A DNA stretch of 64,000 nt, from the NCBI GenBank assembly GCA_907165135.1, contig OU015566.1, positions 11,036,001 through 11,100,000 of the forward strand, read 5' to 3'. Below the pieces are notes generated by a model. The model had not been told where the DNA came from. It did no database searches and was given only the letters and a program-made list of their open reading frames with translations. Source of the DNA: Oikopleura dioica (lineage: Eukaryota; Animalia; Chordata). How positions within the stretch are numbered: position 1 is the stretch's first letter; each line of letters starts with the position of its first letter. Made by a program: the position numbers and the translations under genes. Shown piece by piece: positions 8,201-51,032 of the stretch.

Positions 8201-11200
8201 AGCAAATTTGCAGCTTGAAATATCAGCTTTTTACGAATCCGTTGTTATGCCACTTACGCGCCAGGGAGTTAAGATTATCCATGTAAGAATTAATTCAAGA
8301 ATTTCGGTCTAGAGTGCACGTTTTTTATCAATTAGAGAGCTCGACCCTGATCGCCCGCTAATTGCACAATAAGCAGCGAGTTTTTGCTCTCCCGCTGTTA
8401 TCAAGGGCGACCCGCTGGTCTTATCACTTTTGAGTTTATCCCCCGCTGTGCTAACCGCTTGGTCATTATGTTAATTTGTACATATACTTTTCATAACGAT
8501 ACGGGGTTTGAGTTGTACAGGTGCGTTTGCTCTAGAAACGTGGCTTATGTGAATTTCATACCGAATTTTAAACCATCCAGTCCTGATACCGGCCTGTTTA
8601 AGACCTTTTTAAGATGACCGGCTTCGAGATAAAAAGTTAGGCGGCTAGATAGACAAAGAACGTGGGACGCAAAGCGGATTACTTCACGTAAACCTTTGAA
8701 GAACTATTAAAAACGGATTAAGCGTCATTCTATCGCAACCGCGCTCTCCAATATTGAGTGGAGCTGGCCACCTCTTGCGAAATCGTAAAAGATTAGCTGA
8801 GTCACTATTGTAAGCTTTTTTATAGAAGGTCTTTTTGGCGAAAAAAACGGTTGTCATGGTCGGTTTTTATACTGGTTAGCAATAATGAAACAGCGCCACC
8901 TCAGTTCGAATCAACAGCCAATCAGAAACCAGGCGGGAAGATACTCGAATCTGATTGGCTAAGAGATGCTTGCGTCGTAATAGAAACCCAAAAGATACAT
9001 GGCGGAGTTAATATAAACAATATGCTTCCGGTCGGAAGGCTTTATGGAATGATATTGAGAATGGATTTCTTCCCTTAAAGAGTTTTTCTCTTCTGAAAAT
9101 TGTGAGATTATTTACGGAGAGCGACATGTGCAAAGCTGGGAGTGGAAAACTGCAGCGATTCCTTTTTCTTTCAAAAGCTTTTCTGAATTCGCGAGATTTC
9201 TTTCAGAGTAAGAAATAAAATTTCAATGGCTTAGGAATAGTGACAAATACGTGAATATAGAAAAGTTATTTTATTAAAAATAAAAAATAGAAATGGAAAA
9301 TAGAAAAATAATAAATATAAAAGGCTTAAAAATAACGAGATCTGCATCTCACACAAAATCGTAGGTCGCGGCATGCGTATAGGACTTGTCTACAGTCCTC
9401 GCACAGGATCATCTTGCGACAACATCTTGTGACGTAAGTCGCATCTCGCGTCCAGCAGCACCAACATCGCCCCATCAATGGCCCCGGCTCGTAATTCTCC
9501 TCTTCAGAAGAAGAAGAGATTTGAATGGTCTCTTGAAATACTCGTTTCGAAGCTTGTCGGGATGCTGTGTTCGCGAAAGAGTCTTCATCTAAAAACAAAA
9601 TGTTAAGAAAATTTAGAGTTCGACGGTATACCTTCAGAGTCGCTTATTACTATAACTTGATCTCGAGAACAATGCGGTTGTTCCTCCTGTTTCTTTTTCA
9701 TCTTCTCTTTCGCAGAGTTTTTTGTTCGAGTTCGGGGCTTCTTTGGCTTCTTCAGAGTAGATTCTTTCGGTTTTCTATCTTGCTTTTTCGGAGCAGACGG
9801 TCGCACACGCATGTAATTCGTCTTCTTTGGTTTCTTCTTCGAAGGTCCATTAAGAGAAGTCGCGTCCTAGATTTTTGTATGGAATTCGTTAACGGTTTAT
9901 TTTACCTTTTCTTTTCTTTCTTTTCTAGCGTGCATCATTTGGTGCATTATTCGATTTTGTTTAGGAACATCGTTGCCACAAATTTGACAGAAGAAGAAGT
10001 CATCATCGCTTGAGTCGACCATTTGACGATTTGAAGTCAAGTAAGGATAACAAGGAAGAAGAAGAAAACGTTCTAGAGACAAATACAAACAATCGAACAA
10101 ACAACTTCCACGTCAACAACAATAATTTTTCAATGAGAAAATGAGGGAATGCATGCTAGCGGTAGACTTGAATGCGTAATGGATGCACTTGAGCCTGCGC
10201 TTTCTAGCCATGTCAATTAAAAATTGATCGGAGAGAAACTCGACGAGCTAGAGACATTTGAAACCTTATTTCCTCGAAAAATGAGAGCAATTTTAGCCTT
10301 TTCGAAAAATTGAAAACTCTCTTTGAAAAGCATGTAGTTCTTATGCTACTCAAGAAAGTACAAGAGATTTTATCCGGTACAGGTTTCGTAATTACGATTT
10401 TCGTCCGTTTTTTGCCAAATAATCGGTTGCGAAGTGGTTATTTTTACATTCGATCTCGAGAACACGGACCTAGAATTTTCAAAACAACAAATTTGAAAAC
10501 AGCAAAAACCGAGCTTTTTGGCTTTTTCTCTGAAAAAGAGATGAAATCAAATCATTAATTTAAAAATGTAATGGTATATTGCGTGCTTGGTTGAACAGTT
10601 AGATCAAGAACTTCCAAAGAAACCTCCAAAGAATCCCTTTTTCTTCGGGCTCTCTTGGACACATTCGTCTGCAAAAAGTTAAAAGATTTGTTTTACTGAA
10701 AAGTAAAAGCTTTAAATCTTTTAAACTCTTGTCAAAAGGATTCGCTGCGTTTGGGTCTTTCATTCCATACTTCGTTCTAATCGACTCGTATCTTTTCTGA
10801 CGATTTTCATCAAAATTATCTGAAAATAGAAACGAATTTTCGAATTTCACCGAGCTAACCTTCGCGGATTTTCAATCCTTTCGCGACTGCAGCTTCCTTC
10901 TTGTACTTGTCTTTCTTCTCTTCCAAGGACTTGATTTTGTCTTCTTGATTTCTGATCTTGTCTTGGAGCTTTTCGATCTTCTTCTTTTGCTCGGAGTTCT
11001 CAAGAAGAGTGTCTTCCAGCATCGTGTCCCTACAAAGCCATTTTAGCGTCGAAAGAAAAGTTTTAAAGTTTTTTTGATTTAGTCATTTAGAAGGAGAATC
11101 TTTAACTCAATCTTCTGAGTCCCTAAGTAATCAATTCCAGCCTCAATAACCTTCTCACTGAAGAGATAACTCAACCAAGGCGCCTTATTCACCACTTCCT

Positions 11201-14200
11201 GGATCTCTTCCAGCCAACTTTCAGTCAAAACAACAAATTGTTCTAGAGTCAGCGCTTTTAACTCTAACAAAAGCTCAATCGATGGTCAGGCAGCTTATTA
11301 CGGCTTTCTTCGATTTTACCTTTTGAATTAACGATTACTCATTCCAGCGGAAACTTGAGCCTCAATATCGATCGGCTTTGCGTTTTTGTACTCGCGCTCG
11401 AGTTGTCTTCTAGTTCCTCGGCACCCTTGAACTCGACCGAGCAGTTGAAACATTCACCGATGCTTTCATGGCCTAAAACAAGTTGAACATGTTTGGTAAA
11501 GTAGTAAAGCTTTAAGCTCACCAGAGTCGAAAGAATCCGAGGACATCTCTTCACTCATCTTTGTCTTCTTAGGGGATATTTCCATATCTTCCATGCTTTC
11601 ATTAATCAGCTTTTCCGACATTTGAACGCTCAATACCTTGTCCAGGAACGCAAAGAACTCTGACTTTTTAGTTGAATCTACATTCAAACTGAACTCGTTG
11701 GCAGCTTTTGTAGTGCGGGAAGAGGTAACTAAACCACAAGATTACCCAGCATCCATTCGGTTTTCGCCCGTGTCGATGAGTAACGAAATAGTCCAATCTT
11801 TGGAGTCGTGTGCTGTTGCTTTTGGTTCTCGATAAAATTTGTGACTCTCTTTGTAGGCTTCAACATCGTCACCAGTTAATTTGATTCGAGTTACTTGAAT
11901 AGAAAAACGGAAAATCTAATAGGAATGTAATATCCAGTGGAAGCTCCCTCGCATGAAACGATTATGAAACAATACATAGATTTACTGTTGAGCTAGTTCT
12001 TAACTCTGAATTTGAAGCGTTGAGTCGATTGTTAAAATTCCTCAGTCACTCCGACCATTGAATTCATTTACTATTTATGAACAAGCCTTCATTTTCCCTT
12101 TGATTGTGAAGCTTTTCAATACTTTCGAGATTTTGTGAAGAGTTTTCGCGGTAATATGGCCGGCAGTATTGTGCTCCATTTCGAATGGATCCGCAATGTT
12201 GAGAACAGCAGCTTTGAATAGTTGCTCCGTTAATTGTAGGAACTGAAGAAATCCGAAATGTTTGAATTGACATCGGATCTTATTTTGACGACAATATCAG
12301 GCTCGACTGAGCTGAGCCAATGCGAAAAAGAAAAGAGTACATGGCGATCAGAGTAGAGTAGGTCGACAATCGACCAGCTTTGCTCAGCTCACCGTGTGAA
12401 AAGATAAACTTGGTCATCTTCACTAAAACAAAAATTTTTCTTTGCCAAAAAAATGATAGCGTTCCAAGATGAAGAAAAAGATGATCTCTAAAACAGGTTT
12501 CGAAGAAACGCGTATTCACCGAAGCAGCAGTATTTCCGATGGAGATCTCAAGCTTTTTCCCGCTCAGATTCATCCGAATAACCGGCTTTCGAGCTCCAAT
12601 AACGGCATGTACACTGGAGATAGGTAGAGTCTTTGACAAGGAAACAATCTTTCCGGTGATAAAAAGAACAACGGCTGTTTGATCGCGTTCCTTGCGCGCG
12701 GAATGAGGCTCGTAGCGAACTGTCTTGCGGACAATCTCAATAAACTTCTCTTGCATTCAACACTCACTTCTTGCTTTCCTCTACTCCCAGCCTCAGACTT
12801 ACTTATACCGTAAATCGTTTCTCATGCCTCATCGCTATCTTCCCTATCTCATGAAACACTCATCCCTCTTCATTTTCAAACTTAATCGGGCGAAGAGCGC
12901 GCTTTGTTCACATTTCCAATCTGCGTTGTTTGTTTTTATTTTTTTTTTATTTTTTAGAATAAAAACTCACGCGACACTTTTGAACAAAATCGAACAGAGA
13001 TTTCCAGTTTTCAGAATACATGTAAAGATGAAAGTAGTGAGAGCGCTGGTTGGGTTTGGAGTTATTCATCTTCTTGAAGTTCTGAAAACAGTTTATTTTC
13101 GAAAAAAAAACGATCCTACCATTAATAAGTCGAGCGATGAGCATTTTTCTTTCTGGCTCCGCCCGATCTCTCGCTGTCTCCAAAAATACCAGTAATGATG
13201 GTATTTCTTGACGAGCTGGAATTAGGCTCGACAAGAAAATGGTCTCAGATTTGACCTTATTCAGGACCCTGACTCAGGTTTTCTATACAGGATGCCGAGC
13301 CCAGTCTTCGAACGCCTCGTTTATACGGGCGATGTCTGCCCTCCCGATCCTTTCCTCCCTTCGTTGTTGTAGTTGTCGTCGTCGTTGTTGTTCCTGCCAC
13401 GCCTCATAAATCGGCAACACTCGCGATTTCTTTTCAAAGTATTTAAGTTAGAATTTCATTTAAATTAAATGGAACCGACCTGCGATCCATTTTTGTTATA
13501 CTTCACTCTAAGTGTCCCCTTCTCCAAGTTCAAATCCTTGTATCCTATTATAGGATACGAGTCCCAGTTTTCAGCCCGAGGACGAGCCTCACGGAAATAA
13601 GGCCCGTACGCGTCAACGTCCACGTTGTTGGGCGCCCGCTCGCAAATTTTCAAGTGGTTCTAAAATATATAAAAGAAAATTTCAATAAATTCACCTTTTG
13701 AGACCGCGCGGCTACCACCGTCTCGCAAAAACTGCATTTGTATTTTTTCTCGGCCCAAGTTCGCATTTTTCTTCTGATTGATCATGAAGATGGGGCTCTT
13801 GAGCAGTTAAAAACAATTCTAGAAACTGGTCCGATCCCAAAAATACCTCAAAAATGGTCCCGATCCCAAAAATACCTCAGAAATCAACCCGATCCGAAAA
13901 ATACCTCTCAGAACCGGCCCGATCCCGAAAATACCTCAGAAATGGTCCCGATCCCAAAAATACCTCAGAAATCGGCCCGATCCGAAAAATACCTCTAAGA
14001 ACCGACCCGATCTCAAAAATACCTCAGAAATGGTCCCGATCCCAAAAATACCTGAGAAATCGGTCCGATCCCAAAAATACCTTCAGTGATCGGTCCGATA
14101 GCAATAAAACCTTCAAATTTTGAGTCAATTTCCGAAGATTTATTAAAATTTCAATGCAGTTGATACAGAATAAGATGTTGTAAATAAGGAATTCATTTGA

Positions 14201-17200
14201 TATTCACGAGAAAAAACCGAATTTTGCAGGTAAAATTGTGGCATTTTAAAAGAATAAAGACCCGAAGTGACAATCACAATATACTAAATGATTGAGTTTC
14301 ATTTTATCAAGAAGTAGGTAGATACGATCAATACGACAGATAAAAATACATATGTTTCATTTCAAAATCCAATTTCAAGTAATCTTCGGCTTTGAAAGCT
14401 TAACCTAAATGTCGTTTCATTTTCAATTTGTGATGAGGAATGAGAAGCTGTGACAGTTAAATTGAGGACAGTATCCAAAAGAGGGCGTTGAGAGCACGAA
14501 GGTTTCCCACTGAGAGTTTACTTCATCTTGGTTACGTAAACACTGCAGGTGAGGAGCTTAGTTAGATTGTATCCGCTCTTTCTGAAACTACTCTGATTTT
14601 CATGCTGGATTTCCACCAGTTTGGGAATATCGGACCAGTTTGGAATGTTTTCCAGGAACTCTTTTTTAGTAGACTTGTTCTTTATCAAATGTGGCTCAAT
14701 CGGGAGTCCAGTCGAAATTTGAGGCCAGTGAAATCTGTATCGAGAGTCAGGATCCTCAGTCAAAATATTCTCCATGAGAAATCCAAAATCAATTTTGATC
14801 CGAAAGACGGGTGACATCACATCGAAGATATCTTCAATGAGATTGTTCAAATCAAAATCTTTGTTTATAAGCAATCTCAAATGAGCCGTTTCGACGACTC
14901 GTCCTGGTTTAGGAGGAGGGATAATAAGCCTGTTGTGTAGCTGACCTACTCTCTCTGACTGCCTAAAGTAATCAAGCTCCTCTTCTTCAAGTGGTAGATA
15001 ACTTCCGCCGTATTCTTTACGAAGTGCTTCTAAATCTGCTCTTTCTGATGGATAAAAAGGCATTTTATAAGGAAGAAGCGAAAAAAGTTGATTTATATTC
15101 ACCCAAATTTATTCACATGGAACAGATTAAAGGATTTCGCCGTTAAGGGTCAGTGGTTTACATGTGACGCCGTCCGCCATGACTCGCAGCTTTACAAAAA
15201 TATTCGAGAGAACTTTCTTTTCGATGGAAATTCGTTTTACAATATTGTCGGTAGTCGAGCGTAACATGCGAACTTTGCATGTGTTACTACTGGTCACAGT
15301 TTCATTTAGACAATCAAGAAATTCTTGAAGTTTCAGCTCGTGATTGTGCGGAACTCCTTTCGTTGATCGCTTCGTCTGTTTATTTTCTTCATCGTAGCCA
15401 AAGTACATCTTGTTTCCAAGACAGACAAGTGCGCCATTATTCGTTTGCCATTCCGCTTTAAAAACTTGGTATCAATTCGAAACATCAGCAAACCTTTGAG
15501 AAGTCCAGGAGTTTTGTGATTAAGAGTTGTATCTTCCAGGACAATCCATTTATGCCAAACTTGTAGAAATTCGTCCATGAGTTCCTCCCGGACACAAGGT
15601 AGCAAAGCGGCTTCCATCTGTGACCTTGTTGTTTGTCCATCCGTTCCGCTTCGAGTGAACGCTAAAATATTTTTATGAGTGGCAGAAAGTATAAACTTAC
15701 ATATTGCTAAACTGTCTGTATCGCAATAGTTCAGCTTGTAGGATCCAGGTCTCAGGTATTTGTGAAGAAATTTGTAAACAAAGGAGAGAAAGTGAAGTTT
15801 TGAGTTTTGAAGAATAGCCACACCAAGAACAGTTGGTTTGTCATCTTTGATGCGTAGCTTGTCGAATATGACTTCGGAAATTTCATACTCACCGTTTTCT
15901 TGAGAGAGTGTCTCATGAGATTTAAATGTTGGCTTTATAATTGACTTTTTCAGTTGCTTATCGTTGTTAAATTTGGTATTCGGACGGTCGACCTGCTCGA
16001 TGGCTTTACCGAAACCGCCGCAATTGCCAATCGTTTTAAATGCAAGAGCAAGAGCACTGTTCTTGTCATCAAGAGCATTTACACGACCGTGAGTAATATT
16101 ATCAGCATAATCACTTAGACTCTTAGTTGCTCGAAATTGGGTGAAAGATTGAATATTAGTTATTTCTAAGCCAAGGTCAAGATAAAATTTCACTAATGTT
16201 GTCAGGAGAAACATACTCTTACCATTATATGTTTGTACGACCGTTTCTTGATCGCATTTGCTTCCGGTTTTTTCAAATTGAGCTTTCATATAAGGACTTA
16301 AATGCTCGTTTGTGATTTTCATTCGCTGGATCACTGGCGGAAAATTTATGTACGAGATTTGATCAAAGACCTCTTTCGGACAAGAAACATCCGCTACAAT
16401 AAATCCATATATCTCGTCATTTCGAATGCCGTCAAGAATGCTCTTTTCGGACTCTTTAAGTTTAAATATATGACCCCAATATTTTGAAACACGGTCGACA
16501 TAATATCTATTTCGGCGATGGATCCATTCACATTCGCGCATAATATGAACAGTCCCTTTTCGAGACAACATACGCTTTTTCTTCTCAAACTCATGGTCAG
16601 CCTGACCTGGGTTGCAATCAACGCAATATTGGTGAAAATAACAACCTAAGAACTCAAAATAGTGATGTTTTCCATCAACACAAGCGTAGCCATCAATTTT
16701 ATAATTGAGAACTTGATGCTCTCCCCTGAAATATTGATGTTCGAGTCGGACTCGCTCGCCATTAGCTTGAACCAACAAGGGACTAAATTCGTCGATGTAC
16801 GTCAGCCACTGAAGCGCAGCAAGAGAGTTATCCGTCGTCATGATCGATTTGCGGAAGACTGAATTGTCGATTTTCTGCCATCTTATACCTGATTATAATG
16901 TGAGGTCAGAAATCAAAGAAGACTTACCTGGAGTGGATGGTAGCAACATTTTTTGAGCGAAGAGGTACAAGGCATTGAAGTCGAAAAAGACTATCTTTGT
17001 GAACGGATCCCCATTTGGAGCAAACTTTGCATTTCTCGGAGCGTCTACGTCGGGTCGAAGCTCGGTGTAGCGAGAGTAGACGTTCACCAGACCACCAATT
17101 ATATTATCACGTAAGAGTTTGTGTTCTTTGTGATAATTTCGGTGGAATGAAACTATATAAATGTCATGAAAATCAACAAGAATAACTTACATGTAAGCGG

Positions 17201-20200
17201 GGAACTCTTCGAGTAACCTTCGAAAACACACGCCATCGCAAATTTAGGCAAGCTCATACAGAAAGAAGGGTCAATTTTGAAAGTCTCGAAGAATAATTTG
17301 AACTGATTGTCAATTGCTTTCGCAAAAGGTGTGACATCTGCCAAATTGTAGTGTTTGAGCCAATGACCCATAGAGTAATTTGGATCGCGTCTTTGATTTC
17401 TATAAAACTCCGCTCTGAAAATTTCATAGTCTTCTTCTGAGATTTCCTTATTCTTGAGACTAGAAAAAAATTCTTCTCTTGGAGGGAAATTTTTATCGTT
17501 CATGATATCAAAGACGCTACGATATTTTTCATAAGGCCAAATCGCTTTTCTTTCCTCGACTCCTCCTTGCTTGAGATATCCAGCCAAATCAGTTGGAGTG
17601 CTGAATAGTTTGGCATCCTTGAATTGATATGTTGGCGTTGACATTGAAAAATAATGAGTGCCTTTTTTTATACTAGTGAATTTTGATCCATACTTTTTCA
17701 TAAGAATGGGTATAAGGTAGGGACTTAAAACTTTCAAATCAAATTTAGCACTATTGAAACCGAAAATGTCCATTTTCGCGTAGTTTGTTAGCTCTCGTCG
17801 AAGATATCGAACTTTCATCTTTCGCTCAGCATTGACTAGAAACTGGTCAGCAATATTCATGTTTCAAAATTACCTGAGTTGATATCGATGTTTTCGAGAC
17901 TCTGGATTGCATCTTTTAGCTCTGAAGGAAGATACGTTTCTTCAGAGACAGCAAGGTCTTCAATTTCGTCGACAAATTTTTGAACAAGTTGTTTGGCTGC
18001 ATCATTTTCATCACTTCGCCTTATCAAGAATCGCTGGTATCCAAAATTACTCCCGATTGCGATGGAAAGAAGTCGAAGCTCAGAATGAACAGTTGTTGAC
18101 TTGGTGGTTTCCTCAATCGGTCTCTCCATTGTTTCGATGTCAAACGTAACTAGATTTTCGAATTTTCAAAAAATTTCAAAATAAAGCTTACCGAATCTTG
18201 TCTTTCTGAATTTTCTCATCTCAGAAGACAGGAAACCAGCTTGAATTGCCTCCTCGATCGGGTTTATTGAGACTCCGTAAGCCCGCTGGGTTGGAGTAAT
18301 TTTTTTGACATTAACCTTACATTTCAAATCATGTTTTTTATACAACGTCTCAAAATATGTTTCAAATCCACATTTCGGGTTCAAACATTTGTAAACTGTT
18401 GCTAAATTATTCATGTTGAAAATATATCTCAGATTTAGCGCGTTTTCGGACATAAGCTCGTCTTTATCGACAATAAAATTGAGAGTTCGGGTGGAGTCTT
18501 CGGTTCGAAATGTTTGCAAGAGCTCCAATTTGACTAGTGAACGCTGGTCAGGTAGATGAGATGTGCCTAAACAGAAAAAATTCGTCTCCGCATTCATTTT
18601 TTTCGCATATTTTGACAATTCTTTCGAAAAGACTCGATCCGGTCCATCAAATAAACTCAATCCCTGAACCTTAAACGAAAAATCATTTATGTTCTCGAGT
18701 CGGCCTTTTTTGTCCAATTTACTGAGAAAAATGTCGAGAGAATAAAGGTAAAAATATGAATCACCTTCTTCAACAAATTTATGGGACTTTTTAACGACCA
18801 CATCATCAACTAAAACAAGTTTTATCGATTTTTTACTTTTAGACTTTACTTTAACGATTTCAAGTTTATAAAAGTCCAAAATATGTTCCGTGGCAAGAGA
18901 AGAGTGCGCTAATGATAAATTGTAAATATGCGAAATGAACTGTCGATTAGCTAATTTTCCGTCCTTGAAAAGTTTGCTGTAATCCTCTGCGAATCGCTGA
19001 AGCTCTCCAAGAGTTATCCATGGATTTAACCCAGGAAAAAAGAGATTATACCTTTTCATACTTGAGACTTGACGTCCACTCTCTTTATAACAACGTTGAC
19101 TTGCGCCACCAGCTCAACCAAACTCTAAAAAGACAATTTTGCGCCACCAGCTCAACCAAACTCGATTTCGCGATACTTGCTTATTTCCTGCAAATAAACA
19201 AAACAAAATTATGTCTCTAGAAATCTATTGAATTTCAACTGAGTAGAATGAAACAAGCATGAAAACAGGGTAACCAGTTTGGATAGAAACGGCCAGTTCG
19301 TAGCCCTGTCGTCGCAGGCGGGACCGGCGGCGTGGAGTTCGATCAACAAGGAGAACAGCGGAGTCGACGACAGCAAGAGTGAAATTTTCTTGTTGTGCGA
19401 TGCGGGTGCAAAGCCGTCCGTCCAGGTCGTTAAACTCGTCGCTACCAATAACGACGTCCATCGTATAGGGATGTAGAGCTCCAAGTCTAAATCGGACAAG
19501 CTGGAGAACGCCATCATCGTTCTTGACGCAGAAATAACCTTTGTAGCTGGTCAGCCAAGGCTGTGTCTCAGCAGCGGTGTAGATCAATTCCAGAAAAAAG
19601 CGTAGCTGAGGAATGGGGTGTGTTCGAGCCGTTTCCATCCGAAAGTCAAGGTCAGGCTGATCGTTACCGGGTTGCTCAACTTCCAGATCGCTATCAGAAT
19701 CCATCTTCTTAATCTTTCTCGATTTTCGGACTAAGTCTTTGAGCTTTTCGAAAAAAAGTTTTGCTGTCTTCTTTTCCTTCAGCTCAGCCTTTTTATTTTC
19801 AACTCAATTTCTAGCGCCTCGAATTCTGAAAAGCGCGCCGCGAGTCTGAGCGCCATCGGGGAAATGAGATAAATCCGGGATCAGGGTGAATTGTGAGTAT
19901 AATTGATAATGTCAACTATTGACTATCAATTAAAACCCCTCCCAGAGACTGAAATTGTTCTTTTTTGTCTCGGCTGCGACAGAAAAAATACAGACAACTA
20001 CCAAGTCGATTATCTGGAGCCCGATGATGACATAGAAGACAAAGCTTTTAGCGTTTGGCTTGTATGCGAATTCTGCGCGAAGGAAATAACAATCGCCTTT
20101 ACTCCTGAGGAATGGAACCTTTTCGCCAGTCAGGCTGACAAACAAGAAGACCAATACTTTTCGAGAGTTTCAGCAGTCGCATTTTGCAAAACCTATTTGC

Positions 20201-26200: not shown

Positions 26201-29200
26201 ATCGCTTCCAATGTCAGTTTCATCATCATCTTCAAGCTGATCAAACTGGTCGACATTCTGTCGTTTTTGTTCTGGCTCATCAGTTTCGAATAATTTTCGT
26301 TTGACAGCTAAAAAACCAGTTCTGAAATCGCTTAAAAATAAATTTTACCTCTCGTTTTTTGTGGAGTTGTTGGATGGTAGGTTTCCTCATCATCTTCAAG
26401 CTGATCAACCTGGTCGACTTTCTGTCGTTTTTGTTTCGGCTCATCAGTTTCGAATAATTTTCGTTTGCCAGCTAAAAAACCAGTTCTGAAATTGCTTTAA
26501 AAATAAATTTTACCTCTCGTTTTTGGTGGAGTTGTTGGATAGTAGGTTTCATCATCAGAATCATCTTCGGAGGAGGATGCTGCGCTGGAATCGTCAATGT
26601 CAATTTCACCGTCAGAATTCTCAATCATCTCTTCAAGCCTTGACACAAGGGGCACGTCAAAGTCCAAATGGTCGAGAAGTCCACCTTAATATAGATAAGT
26701 TTTTGAAATGACTCAAGAATAACTTACGAACTCGTCGAAGATAGGTCTCTTTATCGACCTCCATTATGTATTGGTCTCTGATCGTGGGCCAAAGTGCTGC
26801 GAGAAGGAGTGTAAATTGGTTGGTAAGGTTGTAAGCTTGAGCAATGCCGTCGGGATTCGAGGGAAGATCGAACATCTTTTAATATCAAATTTTGATATCT
26901 GATGAAATTCCCTAATCTTATTCCGGTTTTATCGACGGGATCAGTGCGCTTACAACTTGCGCCGCACTCGTTCGCGTGCGCCGCCCCTTCCGCCGGAAGT
27001 AAACTTATCAAAATACAATCCTTCTTCCACGCACAAATGTTTTAATCCGGAGGAACAAACGAATTGACATTCAAATTTTGAAGTCAATTTTCATTTCAAA
27101 AACTTGCATGATCTCAATTATACCTTTAGAAACTGGTCCGATCCCAAAAATACCACTCAGAAATGAGCCCGATCCGAAAAATACCTCTCAGAACCGGCCC
27201 GATCCCAAAAATACCTAAGAAATGGGCCCGATCCGAAAAATACCTCTCAGAACCGGCCCGATCCCAAAAATACCTTCAGAAATCGACCCGATCCCAAAAA
27301 TACCTAAGAAATGGACCTGATCCGAAAAATACCTCTCAGAACCGGCCCGATCCCAAAAATACCTTCAGAAATCGACCCGATCCCAAAAATACCTAAGAAA
27401 TGGACCCGATCCGAAAAATACCTCTCAGAACCGGCCCGATCCCAAAAATACCTAAGAAATGGACCCGATCCGAAAAATACCTCTCAGAACCGGCCCGATC
27501 CCAAAAATACCTTCAGAAATCCGCCCGATCCAAAAAATACCTAAGAAATGGGCCCGATCCGAAAAATACCTCTCAGAACCGGCCCGATCCCAAAAATACC
27601 TTCAGAAATCCGCCCGATCCCAAAAAAATCGATGGTCTTTTCGGTCGGAAATCGGTCGGAAAATCTGAGAGTGTAAATTTGAGCTCGTTAGTCAAAATTG
27701 AAGACCAAAAAAGCTGAAATATCAATTTTTCTTTAATAGTTTTTATTCACACCGACACATAATGGAGCAGAAATTAGAAGTAAACGAAGCAGGTAAGACA
27801 GATTTGTTGACACCGACATGAAATGGAGTAGAAATTTTGAGTTAACGAAGAAGGAAAGACAGATTTATTTATGCGGAAGTTCCGGAGCGTGGCGGTGGAG
27901 CAACAACTTGATTGTCTCCGTCAATGTAAATCGTTCCTGTTTGCTCGGACTGCGTTATAACATCATCGTCAGGGGTCGTACCCAAGTTCCATCCAAGAAT
28001 TGATGTTGATTTGAAGACATTTTCTTGACCGCAAACGGGACAGTCATGAGATGGCTCTTTTTCAGGTTGAAACGGCGAAGCGTACCGGAAAATGTACGCT
28101 TTTGGCTCATTTCTAATCTGTTCAGACAGTGTCTGAAGAGCCTCGCGTTCGATCTCGACCAGAAGTTCCTTCTTAGTGTGGCGAAACTCGAGCAGATGAA
28201 GGAACTCAACCTCGAGTTCATGTTTAGCTCGAATAGGCAGACGGAGCTCAATCTCTTCTCCTGAGAATCCATCAGGGAAGAATTTATCTGCATTTGAGAT
28301 CACTGTTGCGTCAATGTAGAAAACTCCTCCTTTGTTAGCGGTGTGAAAATCAAAATCTTTAATTGTAACGATCATTTTTTGCGAATGAGAGAAGAATCAA
28401 TTTTGCTCCAGAAGTTCAAATGCACTGGCTTACCAGTGTTCTTTTTCTAGCCTTGTGACCGCCTTTACGCTTCCTATGCTTATAAACAAAAGATCCTGCT
28501 TCAAAGAACAACAAAAAGATTTATCACCTACATTTATTTTCACCGAAAAATATTTACAAGCAAAGCACCACAGTATGAAAGTAAAGAAAAGCAAGCGTCA
28601 CAGTTTATCTAAGAAAGAAAAGCAAAGCACCACAAGAAAAGACAGTTTCATTTGAAGATTCAATGATTATACTTTGTCACCTTCCATTCTTTCAGCTTGA
28701 ATATTGGTGATCCACAATTTGAACAATCCTCTGGAGAAGTCTGCTCGAGTTGCATCGGGAAGTTGTATTTAAACGTCCAGCAACCATAAATTGCTTCCGA
28801 TTTTTTTCCCTCGGAAGTGACCACTTTTTCAAGAAGAATTATTGGCACGGGCTTTTTTGAGTGGCGAAATTCCAAAAGCTGAAGGAATTCCGTCTCAACC
28901 TCTTGTTTTGTCGAGACTGTTATCCGAAGATCAAGCTCTGCTGCTGGGAATCCACCAGGAAAGTGAACGTCGATAAGCGGCATGCACATGGCATCAATGT
29001 AAAAAACTCCTCCACAACCTTTATGCTCAAAGTCGAAGGCTTCAATTTGAACCATATAATCAGCTGAGGAAACTTCGATACAACGAAACATTATTTTTTG
29101 ATGAGAATGAGATCAACTATAAATTCTTCTATGAGGTTCAAAAGCGCTGGATACTCGGTGCCTGCTTTGGATCACTGATTCTACTCGAGCGAAACTTTGC

Positions 29201-32200
29201 GTCTTCAATGTTTATAAATAAAGGAACCTGCTCGAAAGAACGACAAAGAAATAAAAAAAAAACACCAAAGTTTATTACTCGAGTAAAGAAGGAGAAAACG
29301 ATCAGAAAACGAAAAGATTAGATGGACATTGGTTGTTCGGAAGTCGCCTGAATTGGAGTTGACTGAATCGGAGTTGCAGGGTGGCTATTTTGGATTTGGG
29401 GGTTAGTTGGAATTGGATTGGATCCAATCCAATAAGGTTTGGATGGAATTTGGATGGCCAGGGTACCGGATTTTGTTGGGGAAAATTGGGCAATTGGGGG
29501 AAATTGGGGAATTGGATCCAATGAAAATACATCGCTAAACTATGCAAAGAAGGGTCATTTTCATGATAAAAATGAACAATTTCGGATAAAAAATCATTGT
29601 CTTGGCTATGTTGATCCTCTTTTCGGATAAAAACTTACTGTTTCGCTTCTTTTCAAAGTACTAAAAGCCTTGGAAAAATTGGAAATCCAATTGGATCTAA
29701 TTGGAATTGGGGATTTTTGGGGAATCGGGTAATAATTGGATTGGGTTGGATTTTGGATGGATAGTTCCGACTCAAAATTTATTGGATGGAAATTGGATGG
29801 CCAGACCCCAAAATTTTGTCCAAAATAGCCACCCTGGGAGTTGACTGGATTGGAGATGGCTGGATGGGAGATGGCTGAATTGGAGTTGACTGAATCGGAG
29901 TTGACTGGATCGGAGATGGCTGGATGGGAGATGGCTGCATCGGAGTTGGCTGGATTGGTGTTGGCTGGATTGGTGTTGGCTGGATTGGTGTTGGCTGGAT
30001 TGGTGTTGGCTGGATAGGTGTTGGCTGAATTGGAGTTGACTGCATTGGAGTTGACTGATTCGGAAGTCGACTAAATCGGAAAGTGTAGGAAGCGGGGATA
30101 TTGTGCTCTCTTTCCCAGTCGGATTGCTTTGACTCGGAAGTAAGGTTGACGGACGCAGGTTGATGAGATTCTGTGAAGGACAGAAGAGTAGCGAACGTTT
30201 CAGAAACTTCAGCGGCAGTCTTTTCAAACATTCTCAAGTTGATTTCTGTAGCAGGTTGAGTGTAGTCGAAATGAGTCTCAAAGCCTGGGATATAAGATCC
30301 CTTGACTTTGAAAAATCCGCCTCCGTTGTGTGATCGAAAAGTGAAAGATTTAATCGTGACAAACATCTTTTTGAGAATGACGAAAATGACAAAATCAAGT
30401 CCAGAAGTGCTAAAGCACTGGTTAGTCAGTGCATCTTTTATAACCAGTGATTATTTTATGTTTACCTTTACAATAAAGTTTTTTCGACTTGTTTATGTTC
30501 GTCGATCGTAAGTTTGACAGATACAATCGACCATATAACAATATGATAGTCATCGTCGTCATCAAGGGGTTTGTTGAAATCGAATGTGAAGGAGAGCCAT
30601 CCTTGTGATATTTCCTCGCCTTCAAATTCATGAGCAAAAATTGCATTGCTCTTGTACGCATCCATGGATGTCACATAAGACAAGTTGCTTTGAGAGATTC
30701 TTCCAAGAGCATTTTGAAATTTCCAATAAGGGAGAATTGGATACTGATTCGTGATTTTCTAGGAATATGATAAATTTTTTTATTCTTTTATGTTATCTTA
30801 CCTGAGGATAACCATGAAGCGACTGTCCATTTAATGTAACGTTTATTTGAGTAAGATCCTGATGAAAACTAAAATTTGTGGACTCAAACGCATCCGATCC
30901 AAACAAGGCATCTGTTTTGATGAGACCAAAGAACATGTACGCGGGAGTATTTCCACCAGTAACATTGAGCAGCTGTACTTGCTTACGTCCTTTGGGTAAA
31001 GCCATTGTTTTTATCATTGTGTCATTAAATTTGTAGGAGATCGGTTTCGATTTGATTCTCGCAAAATGATTTCTCAAGCTTGGAGAGGACACATATTCAA
31101 CCATTGCATAGGCATCTGTTATTTTGAGAGCTTCTCCAGCCGGCAACTTATTATTTGGGTCGCTTCCAATAAAAATTGTAGAGAACTCATGCTTTAAACG
31201 GTAGAGCGTCAGTGATAGATCAGTGTTGAGAGGAAGAGGTTTATTTTCAAGGAAGAATCCGTGAGTAGGTAAGAAGATGAGTTCGTAAACATAATTCCCA
31301 TCAGAGTTGACAAAGCAGCCTGGTCTCCTACCGTCTCTGATTTCTTCCTTAGCCGCATCAGTTGCAAGTGTCTCAAAATTGTACTCGTCGTAGTACCCCT
31401 CGATCTGGAAAGCAGTCATCACATATTGAGGATCATAGTTTGTCAGCTTTGTCAGATAATCAGCGAGCATATAATGTGCGCTAAGATTACAGTTAGCCTT
31501 ATTTATGAACAGAAACTCTTACTTTGAATTGGAGTTATCAATTATTTGAGAATTCACGGCAACTTCTGTTTTTCCAAATTGTTTGCTTGCGAATCCATTG
31601 CAGGGGATGTAGTTCTTGTCCAGTTCGATCGTAAAATGAATCGCAATGTTGTTTTTGACGAGAAAAAGATTTGGATCCGCATCGAAGTGGAAATGAAGAC
31701 GACCGGTCAAACTATCTACCTCTCTTGGATAGTGACGCTTGACGACTTTCTGGTCGTAATACTCAACTTCTATCATAATTTCAGTCTAAATGGATAAAAT
31801 TTGAAGATCGTTTTCACCAATTTTAATCACCAAATATGAGAGAGTTTATCAAAAAGAAGTTGATCGTTTTCAGAAAGATTTTTAGAAAAGATAGAGGAGA
31901 GTTTTTTCAGAGAATAAAGGGAGCGAAAGATAACATAAAAACAAACGTAGAAACCACAGTAAAATGACGCATCTGACTGAATTCTTTTATAAAAATATCT
32001 TTTTCGATCACCAAAAAAGTCGGTTAACTCTTTTGGATATTTTCCTAGTTTCAAACTATCAAAAATCTCGATTTTTGACTTTTCAATACGAAGTGCTATC
32101 CAGTGAGAACCTTTTGACTTTTCTGGTGAAAGATTAACAACTAGAAAAGCAGGATATTCATTAAGAGAAGGTAATGTATCAATAGAGAAAACACCAAGAA

Positions 32201-35200
32201 AATTTTCTACACGTTCTAAACGTTTAGCAATATAGTAAGAGTTCATGCTCTTTTCTTTTTGGACGACTTCTTTGACTTTTTCAAGTCTTTTGTTGTAAAA
32301 TTTCTTTTTTTCTTTGGTTTTGAGGAAGGTTTTTTTCTTGCTGGAGTGAGTTTGAGTTTGGTTGGAGCTTTTTTTGATTTTCTTTTTCCTGCGCCCGACT
32401 GAGATTTGGGAAACCATTTTTTTGGTCGACTTTCGAGCGCGGAAATAATGGTTTTCATTCTCTTGTTTTAATCTCGATCTGGAGAGAAAAGTGTTGGACA
32501 ACGTGTTCCTCGCCTAAGTCGATTGAGAATCTCGTATCCCGCCAGTTATATACGTTCAAGGGGAAGAAAAGGGAGCGTTGGTCGGAAAAATGGCACCACC
32601 TATCGTTTGGACGGAGTTGACCCATCATCAGCGTATTAGGTTGACCATAACAAGAAGCAATCGAGTTACATTCAATGAAACAAATGTCAACGTCACGTGG
32701 AGTGGTCATGAGATTACAGACAGCGCTTACAATTTGAACACAGTATTCTTCGTTGTTATCAAATAAAATTTCAGGAACTTCTAGTTCCTTGCTTCTTGTT
32801 CCGAAAAGATTCAATATCATTGGCGACTAGATTGAGTTCGAAATAATACTTTATTCGAGGTTGACGATTTCCTTCTTCGTCAGCAATTTTATACCAAACT
32901 ATACCAGCTCTTTGACGGATGTCTGTGATGATGTAAACTTCGTCTGACCAATTTTGAGTGTACCCTTTTTCGAAAAGTTCTTTTTTCTTTTTTACTCTCA
33001 CTACGTTGCCAACTTTTAGTCTGGGCTTGACTTTCAAGTCAATGTCGGGATAAAGTCGAGTGAAAACCTGTGCTCTATTTTTTGGTGAGACTTGGTTTGG
33101 AGCCATGCCAATGGAACGATGAGGAGTTGAATTATATCCTTTTGTTATTGCCGGGAGAACGTCAATCCATGTTTTTGTCTTCTTTGTTTTCATGAAAAGA
33201 TGAATACGTTTCCTGAAGGTTTGAATCGCACGTTCTGCTATCGCCGCCTTCATTTTACTTTTGATACTATAGTGATGCATCCCATAACGATCCAGAATTT
33301 TTCGCACATTTGAGTTGTAGAACTCCAGACCTTCATCTGTAATTAAAGAATTTGGCCACTCAAGAAAATCTTGAAATATGTCGTTGAGTGCGTTTGCTAC
33401 ATCCTTTCCAGATTTAGTTTTGAGAGGTCTTGTCCAAACATAACGTGAAAAACAGTCAATGATGAGAAGAATAAAAACGTGATGTCGATTAGAGTATTTG
33501 AGTTTTTGGTAATCAATAAGATCACCCTGGAATATTTTGAACTGAGTGTCGACTATAAATCGTCGACGAGGAAATCGCTTTTTGGAAATACGACGATGGG
33601 TACTCGACACTTTACTCTTCCTGAGAAATTCCGCTACTTTCGCTGAGAACGCTGGAGCGCTTGCCACGTTTTCGTAAAGGGCTTGAATCTGATCCTCCAG
33701 AGCTGACTTCTTCGGAGCTTGGACTTTCGGATGAGTTTGAATTTCTTCTTCGCTTCGATTTTTTTGATTTTTCGTCTGAGCTGACGTATTCGGTACTGGA
33801 TTCGCTTGAGGTTGAAGAGCGTTTTCGCTTATTCTTTTTTGATTTTGATTTCTCGTTCTCGGAACTGTCGTCTTCCGAAGACGCTTCGCTTGAGGTTGAC
33901 TGTCGTCTTCGCTTCTTTGTTTTCTTTTTTGATTTCTTGTCGACACTTGACTTCTTGCTCCGCTTTCTGGATCTTGACCTTTCAACCTCCGACTCTGACG
34001 AGTCTTCGGTAAAACTGTCGCATCTAATCTTTGATTTGACTCTGGTTGATTCAACTGTTTTGCACGGCGGGTTTTTCTTCGCATCTTTCTTTTCAACTGC
34101 CTCGAAAGTATTGTCTCTGTCGATTATATCGAAATTTTGCTTAAAATCGTTGTATGGTACGATGCAAGCCTTCATTCCGCTAACTGAGAAGACAACCGGA
34201 TAATCGGAGAATATATCCGTATACAGTCGATAGCTCGAGGCATGGCCTCGAGGTGATTGATCCAGAAACATGTACGGATACTGCTTATTCTTGTTCTCTT
34301 CCGTCGCTCTTTTGTAAGCTTTTAGAAGTCCAGCTTGACTACAAGCACGTTTGTTAACTGTTCCATCAAGACAGTTTCTACAGAGAAATGTCGCGTTACA
34401 GTTGAGCTTGATATTTCGTCCGAATTTTCCCTGGGCATAGTTATTTTGAGTCATTATCATCACGTTTAGATTTTTCTTTCCACTTGTAACTCGAAAAAGA
34501 TGATCAATTGCCTGACTTTGAATTGCTTCCTCGTACAAATCATCAAGTACAATTGTTGAGTGTGAGGGAATCTCGTCAATTTCTTCTTGAGAAGGCAGAC
34601 CAACCCTGTAACTAACAGGGATACCAAGATCATCCCATTGGACAGGCTTATCTTCAAGAAAACAAGGATAAAAGTAGACAACACGTTTTGTTTTCTTCTG
34701 AAAAATATCTCTGTGTTGTAAAACTTGCTTTGCTAGATAGGTCTTTCCAGCTCCTGATGATCCGCTTAAAAGAATTCTGTAAGGATAGGCAAACCGCATA
34801 TCTGGTAAAATTTCTCCATTTATTATCGTACTCATTTTCTCTTTTGCTTCAATTCTATTCCGCTCATCCTTTTTATTTATAAAATAAAGCGTTGGGTAGA
34901 AATTTAAAATAATCAAAAATGAAATTTTATTTGGATAATTTACGGATATACAACGGAACTAATTGATTACGAAAAAAATTAACATTGAACTTCCGGTAAT
35001 TATTTATCAACTGCACTTCCGGCCCGAAAATACGTGTTTCCGGTCCGGAAATACTTGTTTCCGGACCGGAAGTACTTGTTTACATTAAGTCCTCCATTAA
35101 TCTTTTGGGTTTTAATTACGACGTGCTTGTTTCTATTGATCAGAGATGGCGCTATTTCCTTGGCGCTAACCAATCAAAATTGATTTGAGAAATTAAAAAT

Positions 35201-38200
35201 TGATTGCTAATGGTATAATTTTTGAGTTCTTTCTTCTTCCACGTTAGCCGGATGTCTTGGTCAAATAGCAAATCACACACTTCCCCTTCCTTATCAATTC
35301 GTGTTTCGATAAGGCAATCATTAGTCCGAATTGACTACTGAATCCAGCTCATCGTTGGCGTGAGCTGTCACGTGATTGAGCAGGAAATCTCTGACAAAAA
35401 GACGGAAGCAGTTGGAGGCAGAGCTGCAGGTACTCGGTTCACGCAAGCAGTAATCACCGCCACTAACTGAGTCAGAAATGCGATAAGAACCGAACTGATA
35501 AGTCGCGGAAAGCACAGCACGACGCCCAGCTCAAGCAAGAATGGGACAGGAAAACGGGCCCACAGAAGAGAAAGCAACTATTGCTAAGCATTTCTTTACC
35601 CCTGTTGAAAAAGACTACGGGAAGAAAAGGAACGCGTGCAAAAATTGAGCCAACAACGAAGTCAACACCAACAAAGACATCATTATCAAATCGCCACCAG
35701 TTCCGAGGACGATTATTCGCCCAGGCTAAAACAGTAAATAGCACTTTTGGTCGACACGCCGCTTTCCCAAGAAAACTACTAACCCACACTCTCTTGAACA
35801 CCATTTGTCTACCCTAAAATTGCTGACCAAAAGTTCTAGTCGGAGTACAGGAAATCCAGATGCAATCAGAAGTCACAATTATCTACCTCGAACTGATATG
35901 AAAAAATTAGAGCGAATCTTCGACATTTTTCGTGAGTCCGATATTTTTTAATGGGTTTGATTCTTTTTTAGCCGATCTTCTGGGAGCTGGAAATTTCGCT
36001 GACGTACGGCGCGCAATAAACAGAGAAAGCGGCCAAGAACAGGCGCTGAAATTTATCAAGAAATCCAAAGTCCAAGATAGGCTTCACGTTGACAACGAGA
36101 TCGGCATTATGCAGCGGTATGTTCGGCAGAATTCAAGCGCTCGGCATTTTTTTTCTTTGCAGAAAACAATTTCTAAACTAGCGTGTTTCTAAAAATTCAG
36201 TAGCTTGGAATTCTTTCTTGTTATAAAATTGGAGTACGTATGAAAACCATAAATTGACCGGAGCGGGGCCATAATGATGGGCTTGTCTTATCTCTGCGAA
36301 ATTCTTTCAATCTCACGGAGTTTTAGGTGCAATCATCAAAATATTATACGACTTTATCAATTCTTTGAACTTCCCAAGGAAAGGTTCAAAATTCGAAATA
36401 GACGACTAATAAGCTCCGATTCTTTATTATTAAAGAATAATATGGACCCGACTGTAAGTCTTTCTGCCTGGTCCTTGAGTACGTGAATGGCGGCGATTTA
36501 TTTGATGCAATTCGAGAAGCGGTAAGTGCCTTTTCTCAGGATTACGGAAAATGAACTTGGCTCCACTGGTGACTTTTTGGGAGAAGAAGTGATTCAGAAG
36601 TCTAGTGTTTTGCGTTCAGAAGCGGTTCACGGAGGTCGACGCGGGGAAGATAATCAAAGATGTGGTCGCTGCTCTGGTTTTTCTACACGACCGTCAGTAA
36701 ACGATTCCCAAATACATACATTTTTAAAAGAGAATGCGTTAACTTTTGAATAATTTGGACATTGGGTCTGCATTAGAGAATTCATTTCTAAGCATTTAAG
36801 TTTCGCTTCCTTGTTGGCGCATATCTGACGGTCATCGAGCAAAAATAATTGTGCGGGTTTGAGAGATTTATTTGGAATCCTAGAGTTAGATCGCGCATCG
36901 CGACATAAAGCCGGAGAATGTCCTCATTCAGAAGAATGCCTCGCTACATAATGTTTCTTATATCCACATGGCCAAGGTATGTTACGCACTAGCGGACATT
37001 ACGTAAGCATACAGATACAGAAATTACCTGAAAAATACAGGAAGCGAAAAAATAAAGTTCAAAATTTTCTTCCATTCAAAAAGAAGGAGGCTTTTCTTGC
37101 ACCTCCGGTCGATGACATTTCCGAAAATATTTTGACAAGAGTAACGTCGCCGCGCAAAAAGGTTGATCAAAATTCCAAAGCATCATTTTTCTAAAAAAAA
37201 GATTAATTCAAATTTTATACGAAGCCGAATAACGTGAATTAAAATCAACCAAAAGAGGGTGTGATAATCGATCTTTTCGATGGCTATCCCCTTAAAAATT
37301 TTTCTAGCTTGCTGATTTCGGAATGGCGACGACTGTGGCCGGTCCATTGACAGAAATGTGCTCGACTCCGACATACGTGGCACCGGAAGTGCTCTCCCGT
37401 TCGGGCTACACTTACCAGGAAAGGGTGAGAATTGAAAAGGACGCTTGATAAATTATCGGACATCTCGTGGCGATGAGATACGTCCCCCGGAAAGTTCATT
37501 TCCTCGAGGAGACAACACAGCTCTCTCTGAGGGCGGATTAACTCGTCCATTTTGCGGTCAAGATGATCTCCGCTAAACTCACCTCAAAATTAAGATTGAT
37601 CTTTGGAGTCTCGGCGTTATCACTTATATTCTGCTTTCAGGTGCGTTTTCCTCAAAATTCGCTCTCCATGCATTTTTAACTTTGATAATTAAGGCTCTCC
37701 CCCATTCCGTGCAGAAACAAAGGACGCCAGCTACAATTTGATCCAGCAGGGACAGGCAAGGCTTACCAAAATTCTCCGAAATCGACACCGATCTCGGTTC
37801 ATGGCGGCTTTACTCTCAGCGCTCGCGCTGGGCAGCAGACACAACAAATCTATCAAAACAAACGTTTTAGACAATAATTTTCGCTTCTTTGTTGCCATTT
37901 GAACATTCAGCTGGCTCTTTCGCGGTGCGAATTAGTGGTGTAACGTGAAAGACAGCAGCTGATTTTCGTGGAACTCGGAATGAAGATTTCAAAATTCATC
38001 CTTTATTTCAAATCTGGCAACACGTGACTTTGAAAAATCGAAATTATTTCACGGAAAACGAGCTGGAAAGCGTAAATAATCGAACACGTCGTTTTCAAAA
38101 TTTCCCCAGTTCAGCGCAATATGTTTTTTTATGAAGTAGCAGCCCGTGTCGAACATCAGATAACGTTGAAATTTTGGTCAGCTAGTGCTAGTTTACGTTT

Positions 38201-50300: not shown

Positions 50301-51032
50301 ACTCGGCAGTTACGCAACGGCGATTCATCAATTATCTTAGATAATACTAGACGATGAGAAAACAAAAATTACGTTGACTTCCTCCTTGATCCCTCGTCAA
50401 TCATAATTAAGCGCTTTTCGTTTGGTTCTTTTCTTTCAGCTGTGGTCTGTTTCGAACAACTTTTTGACTCATTTTCGTAAGCAAGGGGCTTCGCAAGACT
50501 TAGGGCTTTGCTCTGCAACCTGTGCAGAAACCTGAGTCAGGTTCCTGAAAAAGCTTTGCCAAAATTACTAGTTTCTGCACAGGTTCCCGCATGTAGTCTA
50601 AGGAATCATTGAAAATCGGGCTTTACGATGTCTTCCACCTTAAAATCGCTTGCTTCTGCGGTTTTATCTTTACGTGGTCATTCCTTCAAATCCAAGCAAA
50701 GTACTAGAATACCCAGTAACGTAATCAAAAAAGCAAAAATGCGGGATGTCGATTGTAGATAATCTACCCGCAATATTTCTTTTATTGGCCCGTTTTTTCC
50801 GCCCTTTGATGATTTGAAATTTTTTTGATTACTCAATTTCGCAAAAATGAAATTTTCTCCCGGTTTAAGAAATTCTTCAAAAGTTCGAAAAATGTCCCAA
50901 AATTGCGCTTCAAGTTCCAACATGTTTTTTTGGCATAAGCAAAAACAGAAACAACGTTGTGTCGCATGGGCGCGTGCGTATTTTTATAAGCTTGATCTTG
51001 GCCACGGCCGCGGCACGATGATGGATAATCGT

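Follow-up and report, generated by a model that had tools for sequence, protein, structure and literature searches.

A probable Maverick/Polinton element from Oikopleura with minimal introns in its polymerase and capsid genes

The 64-kb stretch of DNA presented here (contig OU015566.1), referred to throughout in its full length as the window, contains an element of 26,151 bp at positions 8973-35123 which we believe, with a probability of about 85%, to be an intact-looking Maverick/Polinton of Oikopleura dioica or a close relative. Its genes for the protein-primed DNA polymerase of family B (pPolB) and the capsid are split by AT-rich GT-AG introns of 38-43 nucleotides (nt), which are of the host's minimal class. 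The element was recognized in a reading made from the DNA letters by themselves, which described a complete Maverick/Polinton-like virus with spliced genes; this description holds up well, with homology of the polymerase to the pPolB family, an rve integrase, terminal inverted repeats (TIRs) bordered by a 6-bp target-site duplication (TSD), a double jelly-roll (DJR) fold for the capsid family, and eight precisely placed introns. The further suggestion that the lineage is long adapted to a compact, intron-dense host genome gains support from those same eight introns, which are both precise and very short.

Boundaries and overall organization of the element

Two arms of 65 nt form the only pair of inverted repeats that spans the element end to end, the left at 8973-9037 (plus strand) and the right at 35059-35123 (minus strand), and local alignment of the left arm with the reverse complement of the right gives identity at 56 of 63 positions. 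The pair came from a repeat search with shorter seeds and the arms were then extended by local alignment; a long-seed repeat search gave no inverted repeat spanning the interval 8873-35339, which is where the sequence-only reading had placed the ends. Each arm is adjoined on its outer side by one hexamer, TGCTTG (8967-8972 and 35124-35129), a perfect duplication whose length falls within the 5-8 bp (typically 6 bp) expected of a Maverick/Polinton, for which a 6-bp duplication abutting the TIRs is the signature of integration (range quoted in PMC10748475). The TIR pair and the abutting TGCTTG copies therefore set the bounds at 8973 and 35123, which puts the ends proposed earlier about 100 and 216 nt outside the element. 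At about 65 nt and 89% identity the TIRs are shorter and less perfect than is usual for elements of this kind.

Adjoining the right TIR is a subterminal repeat of 21 nt whose core is palindromic (35017-35081), a related single copy of which is found in the left TIR at about 9024-9037. This repeat may be a binding site for integration or replication proteins.

We count about 18-20 genes within these ends, with which the earlier estimate of about 20 is in fair agreement. Once the eight introns are allowed for, there are no breaks (stops or frameshifts) in pPolB, the major capsid protein (MCP), the protease, the integrase or the ATPase. The G+C content of the window is about 40%, and scans of the window for tRNA genes and for Rfam families gave no match.

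The polymerase gene and its six introns

The pPolB gene occupies positions 15127-19059 on the minus strand, from an ATG at 19059 to a stop codon after 15130, and consists of seven exons separated by six GT-AG introns of 42, 38, 38, 39, 39 and 38 nt. Exon arithmetic, which was applied to both pPolB and MCP and asks that each exon be open in the cumulative phase and that no junction codon be a stop, exactly reproduces the six introns and the product of 1232 residues that had been proposed, without breaks.

The assignment to the pPolB family comes from homology. The largest exon is 86% identical to P0001, a gene model of O. dioica OKI2018_I69 produced by AUGUSTUS with RNA-seq hints, and 69-72% identical to two further models there; the three pPolB models in this one genome (P0001, P0004 and P0014) are mutually only 71-74% identical, and several diverged Maverick lineages therefore coexist in O. 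dioica. At a greater distance, the pPolB exons are 41-46% identical to metagenomic open reading frames (ORFs) carrying PF03175, the protein-primed family-B polymerase family, and PF03175 is matched by six of the 16 members of the pPolB family alignment (best E 3e-15). A Pfam search gave no direct match to the window's own pPolB exons. The exonuclease and polymerase motifs FDIET, NSAKFD, DFNALY and YCDTDS were located in the exons with degenerate patterns, and because these patterns were drawn from our own general knowledge we treat the result as a lead only. Sequence and profile searches of the PDB with pieces of pPolB, MCP, the protease and the ATPase returned no useful match.

Five of the six pPolB introns start with GTAAG or GTAAT and one with GTTTGC, five end in TAG or CAG and intron 6 in AAG, and their G+C content is 0.21-0.33. 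All six measure 38-42 nt and interrupt the frame in phase 1; for the two introns of MCP the phases are 2 and 0.

We compared the introns with relatives by tblastn, keeping alignment bounds and counts, and the relatives entered this comparison through the proteins that protein searches returned. Intron 1 (18150-18191, 42 nt, GTAAGC..TAG) is spanned by 14 codons, all of which are gapped against P0001 and against P0015, an uninterrupted ORF that lacks intron 1 and continues through the positions of introns 2 and 3. At intron 2 (17836-17873, 38 nt, GTAATT..TAG) the alignment switches frame against the same two proteins, and the query coordinates are near-contiguous in P0015 (12 residues unaligned) and overlapping in P0001. 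The coordinates at intron 3 (17153-17190, 38 nt, GTAAGT..TAG) run on without a break, or with an overlap of a few residues, in P0005, P0007-P0010 and P0015, and the ORF of P0002 begins inside the intron. For intron 4 (16889-16927, 39 nt, GTAAGT..CAG), 12 or 13 of the 13 codons are gapped in P0001 and in nine metagenomic relatives of 33-53% identity, which are apparently plain, uninterrupted ORFs.

Intron 5 (15662-15700, 39 nt, GTAAGT..TAG) is free of stop codons in frame, and all 13 of its codons are gapped in P0001, P0004 and P0014. The alignments of eight relatives stop within 1-5 codons of its donor; the ORFs of P0005, P0006, P0008-P0010, P0012 and P0013 terminate at this point, and that of P0003 goes on for another 22 residues that do not align. 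Intron 6 (15456-15493, 38 nt, GTTTGC..AAG), which has a weak donor, coincides with a frame switch in P0001, P0004 and P0014 and with the end of the ORF of P0002. As none of the intronless relatives extends across it, it has the least support of the eight. Taking the gene as a whole, P0001 is gapped at introns 1, 4 and 5 (14 of 14, 12 of 13 and 13 of 13 codons, respectively) and changes reading frame at introns 2, 3 and 6. P0002, which is 61% identical, reads through introns 4 and 5, and has nine identities in 26 positions there as against 330 in 527 outside.

The major capsid protein gene

The MCP gene lies at 30468-31776 on the minus strand, with a coding span from 31776 to 30471 that two introns, of 42 and 43 nt and each of the form GTAAGA..TAG, divide into three exons; here too exon arithmetic yields exactly the two introns and the unbroken 407-residue product that had been read from the sequence. 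Among 154 members of the family in which counts were taken, the 14 codons across intron 1 (31481-31522, 42 nt, phase 2) are absent in 18 relatives, 36 ORFs start just behind the intron, and two read through it. Intron 2 (30759-30801, 43 nt, phase 0) is crossed contiguously into the frame of exon 3 by 27 relatives, and 29 ORFs end at it or run on out of frame.

A profile built from the MCP exons and their close relatives finds 182 proteins at E <= 0.001. The family is one of proteins of about 400 residues, including colinear full-length members of about 395-425 residues. One of these, P0025, is a natural full-length relative of 397 residues that is 42% identical to the window's MCP and colinear with all three of its exons (tblastn E 2e-79). 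We modelled the fold of P0025 from a 73-row family alignment in which the three window exons stood as separate rows, and obtained a predicted double jelly-roll with a predicted local distance difference test score (pLDDT) of 95.1 and a predicted TM-score (pTM) of 0.91. Foldseek matches this model to the DJR capsid proteins of an iridovirus, PBCV-1, Sputnik and mavirus and to vaccinia D13 (E 1e-14 to 1e-10); in a viral structure library the best E is 7e-18, and the matches include a bracovirus protein, adomavirus LO7, giant-virus and virophage capsids, and adintovirus and MELD-virus proteins. At the level of the family, judged on the relative P0025, the predicted fold is thus the double jelly-roll whose absence would, on the sequence-only reading, have counted against the interpretation. 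A capsid family that is conserved, intact and folds well suggests that a particle stage may have been retained and kept under selection.

Precise insertions at shared positions

Each of the eight introns, which measure 38-43 nt, falls where the alignment with relatives is gapped or changes frame, and dozens of relatives, of 40-93% identity, are interrupted at the same places. The G+C content of the introns is 0.19-0.33, compared with about 0.40 overall, and seven of the eight start with GTAAG or GTAAT. A strict scan for short introns, in which the 30-40 codons on either side of a candidate were tested for openness, gives 17 donors on the minus strand of the element versus three on the plus strand and one or two in reversed-sequence controls. 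By chance alone GT..AG pairs link neighbouring open frames hundreds of times in the sequence, and such bridging is therefore no proof in itself; it is the gaps and frame switches against relatives, together with the controls of the scan, that mark the eight stretches as position-conserved insertions with splice signals and not as the outcome of decay. Judged by these alignments against intronless kin, each intron is a precise insertion; some relatives lack the introns, and many diverged ones share their positions.

Candidate introns in the flanks of the element measure 34-51 nt, which agrees with the 48-51 nt reported as the median for introns in assemblies of O. dioica (PMC8008620). Together with the closeness of the polymerase to OKI2018_I69 gene models and with the host ORF carrying EGF_CA domains in the flank (see below), this points to an animal host, O. 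dioica or a near relation of it.

Alternative explanations

Three other explanations for these observations can be considered. The one that survives best, which we nonetheless think improbable, is that the element is a domesticated or immobile relic, its Maverick genes having turned into host genes and for that reason carrying introns, and that it no longer moves or forms virions. Such a history would fit with introns of host type, with the annotation of these genes as ordinary ones in OKI2018_I69, with short and imperfect TIRs, and with the lack of an identified penton. Against it, a full gene set is still enclosed by the TIRs and the perfect 6-bp TSD, with open frames in the polymerase, integrase and capsid genes alike; moreover, the presence in one O. 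dioica genome of at least three pPolB models at 71-74% identity, along with many diverged capsid relatives, is the pattern of a proliferating family and unlike that of a host gene present in a single copy.

A somewhat smaller likelihood attaches to the idea that the intervening stretches are copies of introners or of elements resembling miniature inverted-repeat transposable elements, or else local tandem duplications, and thus secondary insertions into a provirus that are not as old as the lineage. Maverick-Polinton-like proviruses of dinoflagellates are indeed populated by introners (PMC11957031), and the six pPolB introns are alike in phase and nearly equal in length. The eight introns are, however, no more similar to one another than shuffled controls are (mean 0.53 versus 0.52), and have no similarity to the adjoining exons. 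Neither an introner-type nor a tandem-duplication origin is supported by these tests of intron-intron and intron-exon similarity, which were made within the window. Several of the positions are common to relatives of 40-65% identity, and are therefore old. The introns derived from transposable elements that are known to us are far longer than 38-43 nt.

The least credible explanation is that of a decayed, dead Maverick copy in which indels and stops happen to be bridgeable by GT..AG, for although chance links are plentiful, and Barreat and Katzourakis warn that Genewise reports insertions in degraded vertebrate copies as "introns" (PMC8097293), decay would have to produce eight AT-rich stretches of almost uniform length and donor sequence that match gaps in relatives to the codon, leave 1232 and 407 codons open outside them, and exceed the reversed controls 17 to one or two.

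We therefore prefer the reading of an intact-looking Maverick/Polinton with host-type introns in its core genes, against which several points nevertheless weigh. That the eight introns are spliced is something we infer from their sequences and from those of relatives. The metagenomic relatives are presumed to be plain ORF calls on contiguous DNA, and not spliced models, from their sources and from their ends, which fall at intron positions. Intron 6, with its weak donor, depends on gene models and one ORF end. The predicted capsid fold is that of the 42%-identical natural relative and not of the window's own joined protein. The TIR arms are short and only 89% identical, which is odd in an element whose ORFs are intact and whose TSD is perfect. 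Lastly, the claim of a full set of replication, integration and virion genes stands for pPolB, the integrase and the DJR capsid protein but is less firm for the remainder, in that the penton has a positional candidate only (ORF121, described below), and the protease and ATPase are weakly backed, by sub-threshold matches and motifs.

Other genes of the element

The genes at the right end of the element include the integrase and candidates for the remaining virion functions. The retroviral-type rve integrase (32771-34084, minus strand, start provisional) matches PF00665 at E 3.3e-10 (40.5 bits, cut-off 32.6) and has transposase matches among the PHROGs. Beside it lies a P-loop ATPase (33612-34835, minus strand), a candidate for a packaging function, with the Walker A motif GSSGAGKT and the Walker B motif IVLDD; it matches only generic P-loop families and has no assignment to the FtsK/A32 type. 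The ATPase has a long K/S/E-rich tail that overlaps the N-terminus of the integrase frame, and the true ends of both genes are therefore uncertain. The low-complexity K/S/E-rich stretch at 33615-34200 is open in two minus-strand frames and in one plus-strand frame.

A single-exon gene at 31827-32417 (minus strand) encodes a 196-residue candidate for an adenain-like cysteine protease. Its matches to Peptidase_C5 (E 0.0031, 17.6 bits, cut-off 21.3) and Peptidase_C48 (E 0.011) are both below cut-off, and the His- and Cys-centred motifs GSHW and CGFY were found by eye in the translation; PDB sequences gave no match. ORF121 (32455-32820, minus strand) lies between the integrase and the protease and has one relative only; on position it is a candidate for the penton (minor capsid) protein. 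Its predicted model is all-beta, at a pLDDT of 46, which is not usable.

The accessory genes are more diverse. The region at 9326-13273 (minus strand), which we regard as cargo, contains one or more multi-exon genes whose open frames are linked by candidate GT-AG introns of 38-70 nt and whose last exon (9329-9643) ends in a Cys-rich, RING-like domain; it gave no homologues and no Pfam match. The middle region (21373-27090, minus strand) is of low complexity and probably holds multi-exon orphan genes, one of them with a predicted membrane span, again to judge from open frames and candidate introns; neither homologues nor family matches were found for it. At 26217-26557 a 164-nt unit is duplicated, with the same donor and acceptor pair occurring twice (candidate introns 26513-26472 and 26348-26308), in what looks like an exon-intron duplication.

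The other accessory genes are single ORFs, and several of them form small paralogue families. ORF181 (14518-15063, minus strand) is a single exon running from ATG to stop, with no family match. ORF159 (19225-19704, minus strand) and ORF167 (20710-21213, plus strand) are paralogues of each other (E 9e-13) and are arranged divergently around ORF225 (19909-20586, plus strand), which is Cys-rich and has no family match. Three further orphan paralogues stand in tandem on the minus strand, namely ORF168 (27869-28375), ORF143 (28660-29091; 38% identical to ORF168, E 2e-27) and ORF195 (29779-30366), the last of which has a pentapeptide-repeat tail corresponding to a 15-nt repeat at 29837-30057. The earlier assertion that most of the accessory genes are spliced is probably overstated: the cargo and middle regions do contain candidate short introns, but at least eight accessory ORFs (ORF181, ORF159, ORF225, ORF167, ORF168, ORF143, ORF195 and ORF121) are continuous, as are the protease, integrase and ATPase genes. 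A Pfam search with about 45 exon-sized frames gave only the rve, sub-threshold Peptidase_C5 and generic P-loop matches, and the PHROGs brought no gain in family assignment.

Two arrays of direct tandem repeats are situated inside the element at the borders of modules. Array A (13821-14099) has about nine copies of a 29-30-nt unit, and array B (27131-27626) has about 17 copies of the same unit.

Features elsewhere in the window

A separate 2.6-kb element at 40593-43223 has inverted repeats of about 430 nt that are 99% complementary and a 471-residue ORF without a Pfam match, and is probably another DNA transposon. Two more structures are a 318-nt hairpin at 51032-51752 (96% complementary, with an 85-nt loop) and an inverted repeat at 45808-47347 that is made up of a 16-nt tandem motif. 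The flank also contains a host ORF of 562 residues (54561-56249) with calcium-binding EGF (EGF_CA) and cEGF domains.

Origin of the introns and implications

The organization of the element suggests how it may have arisen and how it might be expressed. The rve integrase would have made the 6-bp target-site duplication at insertion, and the genes can be grouped provisionally into modules for replication and integration (pPolB and integrase) and for the virion (DJR capsid protein, protease candidate and P-loop ATPase), to which small paralogue families and an intron-rich cargo are added. These genes would be transcribed in the host nucleus and would depend on the host spliceosome. The element, which is polintovirus-like and of the self-synthesizing kind, would itself be copied as DNA by protein-primed synthesis, and because it replicates in this way its introns would be inherited by every copy and not lost. 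We infer that the introns were acquired within a Maverick lineage long resident in appendicularian genomes, in which Denoeud and colleagues are said to have described, in 2010, a heavy turnover of introns. In its widest form the proposal is of a chordate (appendicularian) polintovirus lineage that co-evolved with its hosts, gained minimal introns in its polymerase and capsid genes, and is intact, multi-copy and possibly particle-forming; we advance this tentatively, with the odds somewhat against it.

If our interpretation is correct there are several consequences. It would mean that elements of this type can adapt deeply to the gene-expression machinery of the host, and the presence of introns in both replication and capsid genes would tie their expression to the host nucleus and spliceosome, which informs the debate as to whether Mavericks are transposons, viruses, or both. 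Intronless and intron-bearing relatives of a multi-copy element would constitute a rare series of intron gains that can be dated internally, and, on the wider proposal just given, no Maverick lineage before this one would have allowed such gains to be placed in order along the phylogeny of the element itself; as the host genome is famous for intron turnover, mechanisms of intron gain could be examined by comparison alone.

There would also be consequences for how these elements are found. In studies of endogenous Polinton-like viruses a lack of introns is commonly taken for granted, and the use of prokaryotic gene callers has been justified on the grounds that endogenous viruses "do not contain introns" (PMC10120064). 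Such callers give exon-sized fragments here, which is what most of the database relatives that we found appear to be, and screens that are based on ORFs or blind to introns would miss or fragment similar elements in compact, intron-rich genomes, so that they would be under-counted in hosts like Oikopleura. Among the papers available to us, none connects Oikopleura to Mavericks or to a major capsid protein.

Comparison with known systems

Adenoviruses and adintoviruses are nuclear double-stranded DNA viruses of animals that have a pPolB, an adenain-type protease (for which the element has a candidate) and a DJR capsid, and adenovirus genes are expressed by way of host splicing. Splicing in adenoviruses joins leaders and alternative transcripts, and does not remove many minimal introns from within the coding sequences of the polymerase and the hexon. 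The matches to the capsid fold include adintovirus, MELD-virus and adomavirus proteins; the element described here, by contrast, is known only as an integrated copy.

Early descriptions of Polintons may mention introns in some species. Intronless core genes are part of the usual, although not defining, description of Mavericks, from which this element departs with its eight introns. The literature agrees with the statement in the sequence-only reading that Polinton core genes are generally described as intronless (PMC8097293; PMC10748475; PMC10120064), and this is how the core genes of intact animal Mavericks in particular are described (PMC8097293; PMC10748475). The element is like those animal Mavericks/Polintons, the vertebrate ones of Barreat and Katzourakis (2021) and the nematode ones of Jeong et al. 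(2023), in having a pPolB and an rve integrase, a DJR capsid protein, candidates for the protease and ATPase, TIRs, a 6-bp TSD, and about 20 genes arranged in modules, and differs from them in the six introns of pPolB and the two of the capsid gene, whose counterparts in intact animal Mavericks are intronless ORFs (PMC8097293; PMC10748475). It differs also in its TIRs, of about 65 nt compared with a quoted 100-1500, and in its length of 26 kb, which is slightly above the quoted 13-25 kb (PMC10748475).

Nematode Mavericks have intron-bearing cargo beside one TIR (Widen et al., bioRxiv 10.1101/2022.07.12.499685), to which the multi-exon region with the RING-like domain at 9326-13273 may be compared. 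In the nematode elements, whose core genes have no introns, the cargo is found between the integrase and a TIR, whereas in the element described here it sits at the end opposite to the integrase and the core genes are split. Intron-type sequences are also present in full-length, capsid-encoding Maverick-Polinton-like proviruses of dinoflagellates (Gozashti et al. 2025, PMC11957031). Those introners, however, are multi-copy transposon families that mostly arrived after integration, and the introns reported here are unique, minimal and shared in position, in an animal host.

A further parallel is Punuivirus of Chlamydomonas, likewise an integrated DNA virus with acquired introns of host type, which have been read as an adaptation to host transcription (bioRxiv 10.64898/2026.10.09.758095). 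Punuivirus is a giant virus whose introns average 176 bp and are enriched in latency genes, and whose virulence programme includes the virion structural genes (bioRxiv 10.64898/2026.10.09.758095); in the Oikopleura element, unlike Punuivirus, it is the polymerase and the major capsid gene that carry the introns.

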